From: Orbicella franksi | Taxonomy: Eukaryota | Reading direction: 5' to 3' | DNA: 64,000 nucleotides | Assembly (NCBI GenBank): GCA_964199315.1 | Contig: OZ116700.1 | Location: forward strand, 23,374,001-23,438,000 | Part shown: positions 26,441 to 35,162 of the stretch, piece by piece | Layout: every line of letters starts with the position of its first letter | Position numbering within the stretch: position 1 is the stretch's first letter | Translations under genes and position numbers: made by a program | Notes under the pieces: generated by a model | What the model was told of the DNA's origin: nothing | What the model saw: the letters and a program-made list of their open reading frames with translations, nothing else | Database searches by the model: none

Positions 26441-27255
26441 ATACTCAAACACTGTTGTACCAATGTTTAAACTCTGGCTGAACTGTTGCATAAAATTATT
26501 ATGGTTTGTATTCATTTTAATATATACTTATAAACAAACAACTAAACAACAGAGTAGTTTTTTGCAACCTTAATAATAATTAATACGATTACAATACATG
26601 TATTGAGAGTTCAAAGGCATTCATTAACATAGCTAAGAATAAGTTGCTATGGATTTAAGGCATTCTGTGAATTGGGAACATTTAAATTTATATAATGTAA
26701 CTTACATCACGCTAGCACTAAATGTCTTTCCCTTGAGCACCATTAACTGGTCAGGCCCTACTCTTTTAGTTGATATTGCCTGGAAAATATTGAAACACTG
26801 AAATTTATTCTGCTATGCAGCACACTCTATACCAATGCTATATTTAACATGGTAATAACACACCTTGCTAAACCTTGATGCAGATCTTTAAGCACTTTCC
26901 TGCTCATCGCAAGAGATTTGCCTATATAAAAGCTTGTGGGTACATAAAACAGGGCTCACATTAATTTTATGGGAGGAAGTAACTGCTAAAATGTGCGCTG
27001 TTCCCATTATGTTAATTCTTGTTATTTTCCGCATCATACTGTCCAAATTGTCTTCCACATTTTAGCCATTAAAATGCACCTTTGCACTATAAACTATGGA
27101 AAACCCTGTGAAAAGAGTCTACAAGCACCTGTCATCAGTAAACACACTGTAGATCATATGAGTACCTAATCTCTCCTGGAACCACATAATGAGCTGTAAA
27201 TTAGCTCTTACAGCCAAAACTGATCAGTTGTTCTGTCCCTAGTCCTCATCAATTC

Positions 27256-30200
27256 TCAAAAGTGAGCAACAATTTCCGACAACATCTGAGAGTAATTCTG
27301 CTCCACATTCAGGGAAGGTAAAGTCACAGACTTGTCACCCTCATGAATTGATACACAAGAGAGTGACGTATTAGCCCCTGTAGTCTGCTTGTTGGAGTTT
27401 TCAAGTGAAAGTTGAGGAAACATCTTTTCTGCCAGGCTATCCATCATGCAGGGGTCCTCTTCCAGTTTTGGCAACTGGCAGTGAGTTAAGTCTGACTGTA
27501 CTCTTCTTGGTCTACAAGGAAAAAATAATTCATATGTGAACTTAGTACAAATATCGCATCATTTTGAACAGTGAATTAATTAAACACACTGCAAATTTTG
27601 TGGGTAGAGGTTGACTTATGCTCTTGAATTTGCTTGAGTACCTGCCCTAGCCATCACTCTCAAAAATTGGCTTGTATACCCTAGGCCTAAGCCGCTTATA
27701 TACAGTGTTAGACTACTAACAGTGCAATACTAACAAATACTAACAATGAGACCCCTTTGCATCGAATGGAAACATTTTTTGACACTTGGAGATTTTGTGT
27801 GCAAATTACAAAACATAACTGTTTTGCTGCATAATTGCCTTATCTTGCTGCAAAATAAAATGTTGTTCAGCTTGGTATAATCATAGTTTTTAATGTTTGG
27901 GAATTTCTGTTCAGTAATTATGTGTCCCATGATTTGAAGAATTTCCCATTTTGGTCATAGCAAGAAATTTGGCATAGTGGTGACACCATTGGAACTGGTG
28001 CAAATGGTGCAAAATGGAAAATGGTACTACCATTTCAGAAGTTCCATTTCTTCTATAAAAATTTCCGGTGGAGTTCATGAACCAAAAATGTGCATTTCAT
28101 TCACATTGTGACCAGAATTTCCAGAATTTTTTGTAAAATTATGGAAAAACAACCACTTTGTCAAATTTTATCTCTTTTGTGGAAATAACTCAATGTTAAG
28201 CTACATGTTAAGGTTATTGAAAAACCTCAAATACACTGGAATGAAACAGTTGTTTGTTGATAGGAAGTAAAATCATTGTGAAATTTGTTTTAATGTTGTC
28301 AGATTATAAAATTTAATGAAGTAAGGATTACTTGTGGAGCATTCACCATATGGTAACCACAGCAAATTGTGAAAATTGAACTTTTTGCAAGGGAAGTTAC
28401 TATAGCACAAGGTTACCTGAAATGCCCATGAAATACAAACTATTTTGCGTACAAACTGTTTTGAGTTTGAAAATGAATCTCTGCTTTGTTCTCACTGTAC
28501 ATACTATATTTAAGCTTCCTCGTATGCTGTATACCTGTAATGTCTCAGTCAAGCATTTTACTGTAGCAAATAATGTGCTGTAAGTAGAAGGAATTTATTT
28601 CACCATGCTGATGTTTATGCACTTCAAGCAATATCAAGAAAATCTGTTCAGTTGTTACAGTGTTGAAGGCCTGATATTGGTTCATTTTAAAACTGAATGC
28701 TCAATATACTTGATTGTTGGCTTCCTTTGGTTATGCTGCCTTTGTTAACAAAAAAGAGTTCATTTCCCTTCCCTGCCAATTTAGGACATGGAGTGCAGAA
28801 AATTTTCCTACCGAAGCAAATATCTTGACATATAACACATCACTGTTGGTCCAATACCAATCAGACAATGATGCTTTATAATGCAAACCCCTAGCTAATA
28901 AACACTGTCTCAAAAGTTTGAGTAGAATTAAATAATTTCCAAGTAGCTCAATGGTTTTTAGTAAGTATTTTTTGACTGGGGAGGTAAAATTACACACCAT
29001 ATCTTCTGCACTGTGAAACAAAATCTGTCACTAGTTGCAACTACAGTGTAGTTAGCAAACAAAAACAATTGTGTAGTCACACATGGTTAACAATATGATG
29101 AATATGCATGACTTAACCAATATGAACTGTAGGTGAAACTTATATGTGAGCAACTGACCACCATGTGAAAATATAACATATATATAATGTAAGTTATGGA
29201 CACAGCTGTTTTTTTAACTAGTTGATGTAAAAACATGAACACAACCAAATGTTTTATACTAGTATTAGGTACATGTACTATGGGTATGTTTGCTGTGCTT
29301 CTGCCTATGCATGGCAGTCAATTAAGTATGTTGTTTTGTACCTTCAGTACCTAACAAAAGTGGAACGTGTTCAAACAGAACCCTAACATAGAGCACTAGC
29401 ATGACCAAAACAAAATTCAGTTTTCAAACAAAGACAATGGCTTCCTGTGATAAAGATACTAGGGAGCTTAAACAAATCATGACGACAACGGCAACAAGAA
29501 CGTCACTAAACAAAAGGTTTAATGACCAAAACAATGGCTGTGCACATGGGTTATAATTCTTGGTACATATCTTTGCCTTCTGCAAAACAACAGCGTGAAA
29601 TGACCAAGTTCTGCGTCGTCTACTGAACGTGGACGACAACGGCTAATTTTTCGTATTTCCATTTGGAATTGAACAATGTCATTGCATATTTAGCCTGAGC
29701 ACGTTTTTAGAGCCATTGGCGTACCGAACAGATCTAGACAATCGTGAATTTTGCTGGTAAAATATAAATTCATTTTCTACTAGGCGTCGTCCTCGACGTC
29801 GTCATCGTCGGTGCCTAAGCTCCCTACTGTGATTTGGAGGTGTTAAGATTAAAATTAATGAAGACACTTTAAGAATTTTCTTCTTTAATTTCACTTGTTA
29901 GAATAGAGTGCAAGCAGGGTGTGGTTTTGGTTTAATCAGTCCTCATGCCAGTTTTATCAATCTCTTGACCGCAGACAACAATTTAGCCCCTGGCTTTGAT
30001 TAATGAGAACCTCTGTCTGACACATGAGCCACAATGAAACGTTCTAAGATGCTTTTGATTGTTATGCCCCTAGGACAAACTCATCAAGTCTGCTGACATA
30101 ATGATTGCAAAGTAATTTATATGAAAGAACCCAGACTGCCAAAAAAAAAAATTAGGTACATTCATGTCCAAAATATTATTTATCTTTGTTCCTTAAACCT

Positions 30201-33200
30201 AAGTACTAAATGTGAGGGTGTGCCATATTATATTACACCTCTAAATGAAGAGTGATCTTATTCATAGTAACAGTGTTTCAGTGGCTGGTTACAACTCCTT
30301 TGTTTGAAGTTGTTAAATATCTTGAAGTTCCACTATCACTCTGCTAACTAAGGAATGTTGCTGTTTGAATTAACCCATCACTCTACTTTTGGTATAAACT
30401 GGGATGCCTGGCCAGTTATAATACTTATAACTTAGTGAACTTGCACAAGGGATCTAGTATAGACAGTGATGACTCAGTTGTTAAGACTTGTGGAGACTGA
30501 TTGTTATTAAGACCATCTTGTCTCCTTTTTTAAATGGCTATTGTGTGGTTAGTTTTGTTTTCCACATAGCCTGAACCTCCTTCAGCTGTTTTATGTAAAA
30601 CAACCCAAACAATGATTAATTTCCGTTCAAAGGGCACTGGATTTTCCAGCCCGGTGTGAGAGAATTTTTAGGTGAAGCTAAGTGGTTAGTGAAAGTTAGT
30701 GGCAATCAGGATGGTTTTAAATTGTATATTTTATACTGCTGATGGACGGGATCAGTTAATACAATAACATGTGCAGTCTGTTGCATCAGGCAGCAGGATT
30801 CTAGCAGGAAGTCTACAAATTTTTATTGTGTACAGAAAAAAGTAAGGTAAATTCTCACCTTCCTCTTCGGATCACAAATTTCTTTGTCTTGTCCTCCTCT
30901 ACAGTCTCAAATAATTTTAAAAGTTGTTCTTGTGGAGAAGTAATCACCAACTTAGGCTCCTTTGGAGGTCGAGGCAAATATTTCTCTTCTGGAGGAGTCA
31001 CTGGCCTTACTTTGCTAACATCATAACTTGTGTTGTTGGCATTGTGAAATAATGGTGGTAATGATGATAGTGTCCCTTCTGTGCTCATTGAGCTATTCTG
31101 GATATCCTTTGGTTCTTGCCAAAATGACTGAGGCAGAGCTCGCATTCTCATTGGAAGAGGACCTGTCATAGTTAAGTGAAACATGAGCTTTTTTTTTATT
31201 TGGTTGAAATGTAAGTTTAAGTTATGCACTGATCAATGAGATACTTGCCACTTCAAAATTGAGAACACAAATTCTGCTTGGCAAGATTTACTCATCTATA
31301 TTGTTGTGAAATGAAAATCAAAGAACACTCATCTTTGGAAGGGTGCCCAACATTACTCCTCCTGAGGTGTTGAAAGTACGTTAACAGTTCCTTGAAGTAT
31401 GACTCATGGCACTGTACTGTGCCATATCCAAAAAAATTAAAATAATACCTCTTGTGAGTGGGAATCTAAAGAGTTGGTTTGGTTGTATTGAAACTACATA
31501 TCTAAATATGTATCACTGCTAGTAGCTTCACTCAATAAAATCTATTAAAGGCTCCTTAAAAGCCCTTAAATTAACATTACTTTGAGACCTGCTGCCTTAT
31601 GAGAAGTTGTGATATTGACTAATTTTTGTTCTAGCATTCTATTTTTAATTTGTCCGGTACGTTCGTTACCTTAGCTAAAAGTAAGGATATTAAATGAAGC
31701 TGATTCTTATCAAATTGCATTGGTGCAACTGTGAAGTTCTTTCACTGTTTGATATTTCCTACCGATTTGCTCAGCTTAAGCATATTTCTCAAATTTCTGT
31801 GTTATATAATTTGTCAAACATGTTGAATTGAATTCAGGCATTACAAGTGGAACTCTTTGCCAGCTGTTAAAAAGATATATATATCATGTGTAGCTTATCA
31901 GCATGCCTGTGGACAGTTAATATTTCAATGTAGACCCATATTAACCCTACAGCACATCTAGCCAGACTGTCTGGCTTGCTCTTCTCCTGTTCAACCACGC
32001 CTGAGATTCATTACCTAAAGATTTATGTTTCTGAATACAATACTATGACTCTTACCCACACATGTACTTTTTACAATCTGTGAGCGTTTGAAAATTGAGG
32101 CCAAAAATGACCCAAAACAAATCTTATTTTAGCTTTGTTGGCTTAACCAAATGATTAGCTCTATGATGTTAATCTAAACACTAACTAAACTAGGATATTT
32201 TGCAGCGGACTCTAGTTTATCAAAACTTAAGATAAAAGTCCATTGCCTCCTAATATATTTAATATTCAATCTTGATTTCAGAAGCCTTTTAACCATTTAC
32301 CACTGAGTTACGTACTTTTTCTTGAAGCAAATATCAAGAAAATAGAGCTTAATGAAAGATCATTGGCAAGTGCAGGAAACATAAAATCCATTTTGTAGAT
32401 ATAAGTACCATTTTGTGTTAATGAAAATAAGAAATCATTTTCAGTGATGTATATCAAATATTACTGCTTTGTATTAAGATCTTTCCCAGAGATTGTATTA
32501 AGAAAAGGGAATTATTATTCTATTACACTGAAGGCAATTTTAGACCAAATGTGACATGTTACAGAGATGTGAGGTAATTGATACTAAAGTTGGCTTGTAA
32601 TCACAAGAATAACAGCATTCCAAGTTTTGCAAAATCTTTAAAAACAACAATATTTAAGGTTCAAAGCATTCGGATTAATTCCAATTTCAGGTATTAATCA
32701 CACAGCATGTAGAAATTGCTTTGGATGAAAAGTTTCTCTGCTCTTTTTATTGAGATCAAAACGTGAAATCATAAGATTTGAAAATGTTGGCTGCAATATC
32801 GTGTCTGAGATCTGTTATGTCCATTGTTAGCTGTGAGTTGACAACAAGGAAAGAGAAATTAATGGCTGGTAAATGCACTTGCTTTTCTATAGAAGTCATT
32901 TATCAGTTGTCCTGCAAGTTGACAAGTGAATGTCAAATTAGGCCTGTTGTATTCCACATCAAGACTACTGAACAATCGCTGTCACTTGTCACTATACACG
33001 CATGCACCCCTGCATGCACCGTGCATATGTGCATCAGAAATTTGTTTGAACCCTGATAAAAAGTGACCTTTTGCTGCCACAAATCGCTTTTTCATACTTG
33101 TAAACCTTTATCAGTCTGCGGAAAAGTAGAATAAAATAGACGATGTCTGTGGTGGATGTTGCTCTTTTGATCTGCACGTTAGTGAACAGTTTTATTATTT

Positions 33201-35162
33201 ACGAAACTTTTGACCGTCAACTTGATATACTTAAAAAAGAAAAAACCAGAAAAAGGTCGATCTAAGTTAACAAAGGAGTGGAACCGACAACTCTGTCCTT
33301 TAATATATTCTTCTAGTCCCAATGAAAACCATTACCTGTATAACTTCGGCACAGTGAAGCGTAAATATACTTTCCTCAGTGATTAGTTTTAGAATTAACA
33401 TACTGCATACGTGTAGGAACTGTTACGCTAAATTTCTCTGATTTATTTGAAACTACATGCGCATTACACGAGCAAGTGTTACATCTAAGTGCAGTTGTTC
33501 AGATGAACTTAAGTATACAGGAGATATCGCACATATCGCGCACAGTTGTATTATGTATATCTGTCCGTGTTCGTCTATCCAAAACGTTAAGTGCCACAAC
33601 ATCTTTTGTGATGATGCCATCTTCACCTCGTACATTGTGTTGTGTTATACCACCGCTGCTCAGTGTGTAACCTCTGCTAGTTGAGCTCCTATTTCTGCAT
33701 GTTTCATCAGGGCACAATCATAAAACTACCGCTTAAACATTGAACTGTACATGATACGAAGGCGATTTGTTATGATCATGTTCGCGATTTGCATGACAAG
33801 CATTAGGTTCTGCCATGGTCACGAGATGTTTTAATAGATCTTCGACATGCTTAAAACTGATTTGGCATGTTCAATGCGGGAATTCGCGAAAAAAGGACTA
33901 AATCCTGAAGTATATTGCTTTGTGTGTAAACTGTCCTCATGTCAAATGTACAGTAGCGTGCAGGCATTATTTTACATTGGAAACTTAATAGTATTGCCAT
34001 TTGGTTTCAACTCGTCTTTGCAAACGTGTAATCAGTGAAGCTCGGCACGGTTCGTGCTAAGGAATAGACACCGCAAATAACTCGCTACTGCGCAGAAAGT
34101 TTTTGGCTAAATACAGAGACACTATGTCGATCCACGGACCGGCGGCCACATCACATATGAACGACGTCTATTCAGCTATCCGACGACCCTCTGTGGAAGT
34201 GAAATGTTTATATAAAACAAAGAGCCGCAAGTAAATACGACAACAATATATAAAGCGATTTTCACGAAAAATATGTTTGTTAGGTAAACGATGAACGAAA
34301 CAGAATAGGTGCTCTGGTCGCATACTTGTCTTTGAAAACACTAGCAGCATCGAGGCCGCTGTCAAAATCTAACAGAGCGCAGCTACCGCAGGGCAAGTTA
34401 CTTACCCGGCATTAAAACTATTCCCAAAGCGCAAGCACGCAATAGGAAAGTCACGTAGACTCAGGCCAGACTTATTTGATTGGTAATCTTAGTACAAGCC
34501 AACATCTTGTATCATGAATGAACTCTTGAAAATACAGTCACACCGTGAGAGAAGCTTGCGCTTGTTTTCAAGTAAATGAGATGTCATAAAACTTTCCACA
34601 CCGAAGGCCACTACTGCCGTCGTGATGATTGTACACGGCCAAATTCGTTTATAGCCTTGTTAGTGTTCGATTAGCATACCCCAACCACAAAGTATCACCC
34701 ACCAACCGATTATAGCAAAAATAAATCGTAATTTAAGTTAAATCTTGGTCGATTCACCGCAATCTACTAAGGTAGATCTCATTTGACTACTAATAAAGCG
34801 ATCGAAGGCGGCTGTGGGAGAGTCAGGCATCATTGAGTATCACAAAGTAACGTACCTCGCTTGGGTTTCAGTCTAGCTTCAAGCTTATTGAAGTCTGGTG
34901 ATGTCTCCCTTCGTTTCAGAGTAAGATTCCCAGCTTGGGATAGTAAAAGTCTTTGTTTTCGGCCTCTCTTAGATAGTTCCTTAGCGCCAGTTTCGCGGAT
35001 TGGACTCAACAACGCCGGAGCGGCGACCCTGTTTAGCGAAAGACTCTTGCCTCTCACAACAAGTGGAGGAGGCGATTGAGGGGAAGAAGGTCCGCACGGA
35101 CTTGGAGGAGACCTCCAGTTTAAAGTATCCTTTTGCTGAGTTCGTTTTCGTAGAGGATCCAT
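27256..35162 (-). CDS. Uncharacterised 288-aa protein with a YAP/TAZ/FAM181-type TEAD-binding omega-loop motif, an LxxLFxxV helix and an AT-hook-like motif; 3 exons
   Basis: Exons 35162-34856 (donor G|GTACGT), 31162-30859 (acceptor GACAG, donor AG|GTGAGA) and 27511-27256 (acceptor TTGTAG, stop TGA) join in frame (867 nt). The product contains PMRMRALPQSFWQEP (31154-31110), LLKLFETV (30923-30900) and RRGR|PRR across the exon 2/3 junction. Confidence 0.8.
29461..29825. mobile_element. Harbinger-like MITE
   Basis: ACT-AGGGAGCTTA...TAAGCTCCCT-ACT, with a 3-bp TSD. Confidence 0.7.

Follow-up and report, generated by a model that had tools for sequence, protein, structure and literature searches.

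The window analyzed here, a stretch of 64,000 nucleotides from the coral Orbicella franksi (contig OZ116700.1, positions 23,374,001 to 23,438,000), carries on its minus strand a gene with three exons that encodes a protein of 288 amino acids. Its coding segments are:

34856..35162, minus strand: coding part of exon 1, from M1 to the first base of G103 (tblastn of the transcript-derived protein P0009; GT donor after ...AAGCGAG; RNA contigs)
30859..31162, minus strand: exon 2, from G103 to the second base of R204 (open reading frame and translation; splice joint; RNA contigs)
27256..27511, minus strand: exon 3, from the third base of R204 to the stop codon (tblastn at 100%; splice joint)

The locus is a real, spliced, expressed and single-copy coral gene. 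The minus-strand open frame at 30855..31229 holds both a splice acceptor and a splice donor, and the stop-free minus-strand translation of 30858-31160 contains, exactly and at the same coordinates, the two motifs that a sequence-only reading of this DNA had quoted as a TEAD-binding module. The 288-aa product assumed in that reading exists as well, as seen from the three exons, the RNA splice joint and P0009. This transcript-derived protein of 288 aa, returned by our profile search, maps to the window in three pieces by tblastn with one substitution, and the window residue at that position agrees with Orbicella faveolata XP_020616320.1 (LOC110054284), which is the same product and is annotated as "uncharacterized protein". 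Exon 2 is present in RNA-library contigs of many runs from at least nine studies. When the contigs of four runs were mapped onto window positions 27200-33199, the splice joint 27511|30859 (GT..AG, minus strand) was found in three of them, contigs of 306 nt spanned exactly exon 2, and the loose contig end at 31164 was the reverse complement of the exon 1 end, i.e., the contigs run into exon 1. Contig depth over the exons was 5-10-fold that over the introns, and the gene is present as a single copy in the 497-Mb genome.

Intron 2 contains one further feature, which lies outside the gene product:

29455..29800, no strand assigned: interspersed repeat of about 345 bp (copies; RNA-contig depth)

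We scored 40 copies of this repeat at 87-92% identity on many contigs, with 2989 candidates at first look. RNA contigs, many of them partial, cover it at very high depth, and Rfam returned no match; the repeat is likely to be a transcribed element resembling a SINE or MITE.

The protein is built around exon 2. The exon 1 product is a disordered, basic and Pro/Ser-rich N-terminus that has neither a FAM181/PERCC1-type helix nor an LxxLF motif. Exon 2 encodes an omega loop, an LPPL motif, an RPVTPP motif, a strand followed by an LxxLF helix, and the first half of RRGRP. Exon 3 completes RRGRPRR and continues with a DP-helix motif and a C-terminal hairpin and helix ending ...EQNYSQMLSEIVAHF. Conservation was assessed in an alignment of 23 full-length family members from at least nine phyla, to which the counts below refer. 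The first of the two quoted motifs, PLPMRMRALPQSFWQEP, covers residues 104-120 (31160..31110, minus strand), and the conserved elements of exon 2 are:

31110..31157, minus strand: omega loop LPMRMRALPQSFWQEP, aa 105-120 (Pfam TEADIR3; match to the coral YAP loop; family-wide invariance)
31050..31061, minus strand: LPPL, aa 137-140 (L137, P138 and P139 invariant, L140 near-invariant)
30984..31007, minus strand: RPVTPPEE, aa 155-162 (PxTPP in 20 of 23 members; P156, T158 and P159 near-invariant)
30900..30953, minus strand: strand-like KLVIT and helix with LxxLFxxV, KLVITSPQEQLLKLFETV, aa 173-190 (conservation; AlphaFold2 helix)

Judged by its motif, the PxTP site within RPVTPPEE appears to have the shape of a proline-directed kinase site. 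A basic-flanked RGRP with the pattern [KR]x?[KR]GRP[KR] occurs in 18 of the 23 members, with R202 invariant. This motif resembles an AT-hook-type core and could equally be a nuclear localization signal; the Pfam AT_hook model gave no match at E up to 1 in the 10 family members scanned. In exon 3 the conserved columns are D223, P224, P236, L268, P269 and L281, and the family C-terminus consists of the DP-helix motif followed by a hairpin and a helix ending NYSQMLSEL. AlphaFold2 run on the family alignment gave a mean pLDDT of 53, with helices, strands and confidence peaks that coincide with the conserved motifs. It places strands at 255-267 and a helix at 277-287 in the C-terminal part, and no helix in residues 1-100. 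The coral protein is thus modeled as largely disordered and assembled from short conserved motifs. A complex prediction of residues 84-206 with the YAP-binding domain of TEAD scored 0.00, but with TEAD itself unfolded at pLDDT 27 this score weighs neither for nor against binding; the TEAD input was a metatranscriptome cDNA about 80% identical to the coral TEAD exons. The only gene with a TEAD YAP-binding domain that we detected in the genome lies at G000:C2:27706847-27709942 and has at least four exons.

The protein belongs to a conserved, unnamed family that ranges from cnidarians to amphioxus. An exhaustive HMMER search returned 61 family proteins, and a word-indexed profile search returned 150 matches with a best E of 1e-111. 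The cnidarian members come from scleractinian corals and a scyphozoan, and those listed on the lophotrochozoan side from molluscs, annelids, a brachiopod, nemerteans and bryozoans. Arthropods are represented by chelicerates, crustaceans, a myriapod, hemimetabolous insects and a beetle, and the deuterostome side by echinoderms, a hemichordate and amphioxus. The family is therefore not a coral peculiarity, and the suggestion that its architecture is an oddity of an early-branching animal does not fit its wide distribution among bilaterian invertebrates. Among the best 120 of the 150 matches there was no vertebrate member and none that bears the name PERCC1 or FAM181; the members are annotated as "uncharacterized" or carry evidently spurious automatic names. 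Our literature search found no paper on the family, on its locus names or on a fifth omega-loop family, and look-alikes in the ESM Atlas showed low recognition and no related named clusters.

A curated model confirms the omega loop, which is more than a look-alike. Pfam TEADIR3 (PF15238), a 16-position model with a curated gathering cut-off of 26 bits, matched the exon 2 peptide over all 16 positions with 35.1 bits (E 1.4e-8) and the full 288-aa protein with 32.1 bits, which upholds the identity first proposed for this motif. All 10 family members scanned scored between 27.5 and 33.8 bits. When the whole 497-Mb genome was scanned in six frames, only five sites exceeded the cut-off, with the exon 2 site scoring highest; a sixth site, which narrowly missed the cut-off, belongs to a second Vgll copy, located on a small contig. 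Since the remaining four sites above the cut-off belong to the coral YAP gene, two FAM181-type genes and one Vgll gene, the model is highly specific in the coral genome. The loop retains, in register, the counterparts of YAP M86, R89, L91, P92, S94, F95 and P99, which are reported to dominate the binding energy (PMC7784741). All YAP residues that cost >1.5-3 kcal/mol on mutation (costs from PMC7784741) are kept in the coral loop and invariant in the family. P106, M107, R110, P113, S115, F116 and P120 are the same in all 23 full-length members, and 10 of 16 positions are identical between the coral loop and the coral YAP loop. The YAP omega-loop peptide binds at about 4 uM (PMC7784741), and FAM181A binds TEAD solely at interface 3, where the omega loop alone is sufficient (PMC10146773). 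Judged by these residues, the coral loop probably binds TEAD interface 3. For the explanation as a whole, i.e., that exon 2 belongs to a gene of an unnamed family whose protein would dock onto TEAD by the loop, possibly as part of a permuted clamp, we estimate a probability of about 65%.

The second conserved element is the strand and LxxLF helix downstream of the loop. In the coral protein the helix reads LLKLFETV, and the gap of 62 residues between P120 of the loop and L183 of the helix is as first described. Both motifs are conserved in the orthologues, and L183, L186 and F187 are invariant in the 23 full-length members. The distance from loop to LxxLF varies from 54 to 179 residues, but the helix is always downstream; the pattern [LMIV]xx[LMH]F was found upstream of the loop in 0 of 23 members. 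The permuted order noted in the sequence-only reading is therefore a constant of the family. In the AlphaFold2 model residues 179-185 form a helix, and local pLDDT peaks there at about 70. A conserved, short hydrophobic stretch (consensus R-K-I-T-V) and a T/D cap stand in front of the helix, at a spacing like that in YAP, and acidic residues flank it (D/E before, E/D-x-V-E after). The segment FNKLEARL just upstream of the loop was also considered as an interface-2 element and ruled out, as it is unconserved even among cnidarians.

Profile comparisons did not bear out the proposed equivalence of this element to the part of YAP that occupies interfaces 1/2. In a PDB search at E up to 10, a strand-helix profile of 24 columns matched no chain of YAP, TAZ or Vgll, and in hhalign against the coral YAP exon it preferred a segment other than the YAP helix. 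Against skate FAM181B its best match was the LxxLF motif, weakly (P 0.027), and the pattern LxxLF-[DE]-x-V is common to the skate protein and the downstream helix. Against a mollusc FAM181-type protein "LF" alone was aligned. Acidic LLxxLF motifs are just as characteristic of activation domains. The downstream strand-helix is, by its residues, a candidate TEAD interface 1/2 element or a candidate activation motif, and going by motif resemblance only, the helix may use interface 2.

The protein could accordingly be a TEAD binder that uses the loop only, as FAM181A does, with the acidic LLxxLF serving in activation, co-regulator recruitment or nuclear export. That the helix profile matched neither YAP, TAZ nor Vgll in the PDB, and did not settle on the YAP helix when aligned to the coral YAP exon, speaks for such a division of labor, as do the acidic flanks, which are shared with many activation motifs, and the Pfam scan of 10 members, in which no other recognizable effector domain was found. 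The binding of FAM181A at interface 3 alone provides a precedent (PMC10146773). However, the YAP-like layout of strand and helix, with the R-K-I-T-V stretch and the T/D cap before the helix, speaks against a loop-only binder, and the best hhalign match in skate FAM181B is exactly the LxxLF motif. Furthermore, joining the YAP helix to its loop improves affinity from micromolar to about 60 nM (PMC7784741), and this gain gives a selective reason to keep helix and loop together. On balance we consider binding by the loop only unlikely.

Much less credible is the idea that the omega-loop-like motif serves a partner other than TEAD and that the protein is unrelated to TEAD. The motif has just 16 residues and the TEAD link of all members is predicted, but every other above-cut-off TEADIR3 site in the genome lies in a known TEAD-binding family, and the invariant positions match the TEAD-contact hot spots of YAP one for one (PMC7784741).

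The coral protein can also be compared with the known TEAD cofactors. Separate YAP, FAM181-type and Vgll genes are present elsewhere in the same genome, and the coral protein is therefore not an orthologue of any of these. With YAP/TAZ/Yorkie it shares M, R, L, P, S, F and P of the loop in register, and with YAP an LxxLFxxV helix behind a short hydrophobic stretch. However, the helix comes first in YAP and is joined to the loop by a linker of 4-15 residues, whereas in the coral family the loop comes first and the helix follows 54-179 residues on. The second F of the YAP loop is W in the coral protein, and only the loop aligns between the coral protein and coral YAP. The coral YAP exon itself (G000:C7:6838326-6838373) has the canonical order, with the strand VVHV, the helix LEALFHVV and the omega loop LPMRLRKLPPSFFKQP, followed by the start of the WW domain. 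The WW domains, HxRxxS LATS sites and PDZ-binding end of YAP/TAZ/Yorkie are absent from the coral protein. For WW domain, PPxY and LATS site this absence had been noted from the coral sequence, and it extends to the family: Pfam found no WW domain in 10 members and the pattern W-x20-23-W-xx-P occurred in 0 of 23, PPxY was not found in the 23 members, and HxRxxS/T is missing in 22 of 23, the single occurrence lying outside the conserved columns.

Vestigial/VGLL proteins resemble the family in that a strand-helix element and an omega loop occupy the same TEAD surfaces, but the Tondu motif of Vg (a VxxHF helix) precedes the loop, whereas the coral helix follows it. Vg_Tdu (PF07545) had no match at E up to 1 in 10 members. 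The genome contains two Tondu matches, on contigs C2 and C41, and both adjoin other omega loops. One is a Vgll-type gene (G000:C2:34502637-34504264) with Tondu followed by an omega-loop exon about 1.5 kb downstream; the second copy (G000:C41:11856-13028) has the same layout on a small contig and is possibly an uncollapsed haplotype.

FAM181A and FAM181B are, like the coral protein, long and disordered, with a loop ending SFW-x-EP. However, their strongly conserved N-terminal helix and basic box (SLLNF...KRKVNHRKYLQ.QL) are absent from the coral family, and where FAM181 has an LxxLF, it lies upstream of the loop and not downstream. FAM181B tolerates 54 residues between LxxLF and loop (PMC7784741). 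In hhalign the family profile aligned with a FAM181 profile of 15 members over the loop alone (19 columns, E 1e-4), in agreement with the earlier remark that the N-terminal FAM181 helix is lacking. The exon 2 profile retrieved from the PDB the FAM181A loop peptide alone, at E 1. Two single-exon FAM181-type coral genes (G000:C9:27840898 and G000:C6:17265898) have the N-terminal helix, basic box and omega loop, and the former matches skate FAM181B at E 5.6e-10. In the FAM181 alignment, the sea-anemone FAM181-type orthologues have apparently lost the loop consensus. A C-terminal "QNYSQ" similarity between our protein and a coral FAM181-type gene (hhalign 83%) was rejected as chance, as it is unconserved in FAM181 orthologues and disappeared with a larger profile.

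PERCC1 is a predicted TEAD cofactor with an SFW-type omega loop, no WW domain and a conserved C-terminal region, and its orthologues are reported in echinoderms, molluscs, annelids and chelicerates (PMC9710580). In all these respects, including the overlapping invertebrate range, it resembles the coral family. However, PERCC1 has an N-terminal helix in common with FAM181, and its interface-2 LxxLF stands directly before the interface-3 loop in a block of about 50 residues (PMC9710580). The coral protein has no predicted helix in residues 1-100 and no alignment to the FAM181 N-terminus, and the 40 residues before the loop are basic and proline-rich, without LxxLF in 23 of 23 members. The sequence-only reading had named orthology to FAM181 or PERCC1 as the case against itself; for FAM181 this case falls, as the coral has its own FAM181-type genes elsewhere, whereas the family is set apart from PERCC1 through PERCC1's published description only. 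That the coral family merely represents PERCC1 or FAM181 orthologues in invertebrates, with an arrangement already published, we regard as the least credible account of all, since the omega loop and conserved C-terminal region of PERCC1 (PMC9710580) and the overlap in phyla, the only argument for identity, stand against the missing N-terminal helix and upstream LxxLF, the 19 loop columns that alone align with FAM181, the FAM181-type genes at other coral loci, and the fact that no source names any listed member PERCC1 or FAM181.

We infer the mechanism, in each of its binding steps, from what was observed: the gene model, its expression, the motifs, their family-wide conservation and the separation from YAP, FAM181 and Vgll. 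Residues 105-120, the omega loop, would dock into interface 3 of the YAP-binding domain of TEAD, by analogy with the loops of YAP, TAZ, FAM181A/B and Vg. Docking at the same interface would in turn imply competition with these proteins for TEAD. Because the family has no WW domain, PPxY or conserved LATS site, it would not be under canonical Hippo control, although S115 (the counterpart of YAP S94) and the conserved PxTP site could still be regulated. A flexible linker of 54-179 residues would separate the loop from the strand and LxxLF helix. The linker has sufficient length for this second element to reach TEAD interfaces 1/2, where it might bind in turn and increase the affinity in a permuted I3-I1/I2 arrangement, a step to which we give slightly less than even odds. 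Nuclear or DNA contact and the recruitment of effectors could come from the basic RGRP motif and the hairpin-helix at the C-terminus.

On its motifs, the coral protein shows a variant architecture that is new among TEAD cofactors with an omega loop, TEAD binding being a prediction, and it is likely a fifth kind of TEAD cofactor. A stronger version is more doubtful and is put forward tentatively: that this is an ancient fifth TEAD-cofactor family, dating at least to the cnidarian-bilaterian ancestor, that engages all three TEAD interfaces in circularly permuted order (the loop, a long linker, then strand and LxxLF helix), has an AT-hook-type DNA contact of its own and escapes LATS. On this version the family would have been overlooked so far because no member had come to light in vertebrates, Drosophila or C. 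elegans.

Only a few cofactor families, namely YAP/TAZ, Vgll, FAM181 and PERCC1, compete to set the output of TEAD. If the proposed docking is true, corals, molluscs, annelids, arthropods, echinoderms and amphioxus would have an additional, Hippo-independent input to TEAD. The family would offer a clean natural test of what the loop contributes alone. Should the helix indeed occupy interface 2, it would follow that a TEAD-binding module can have its parts permuted, which bears on the evolution of disordered multi-motif interfaces and on the design of bivalent TEAD ligands.
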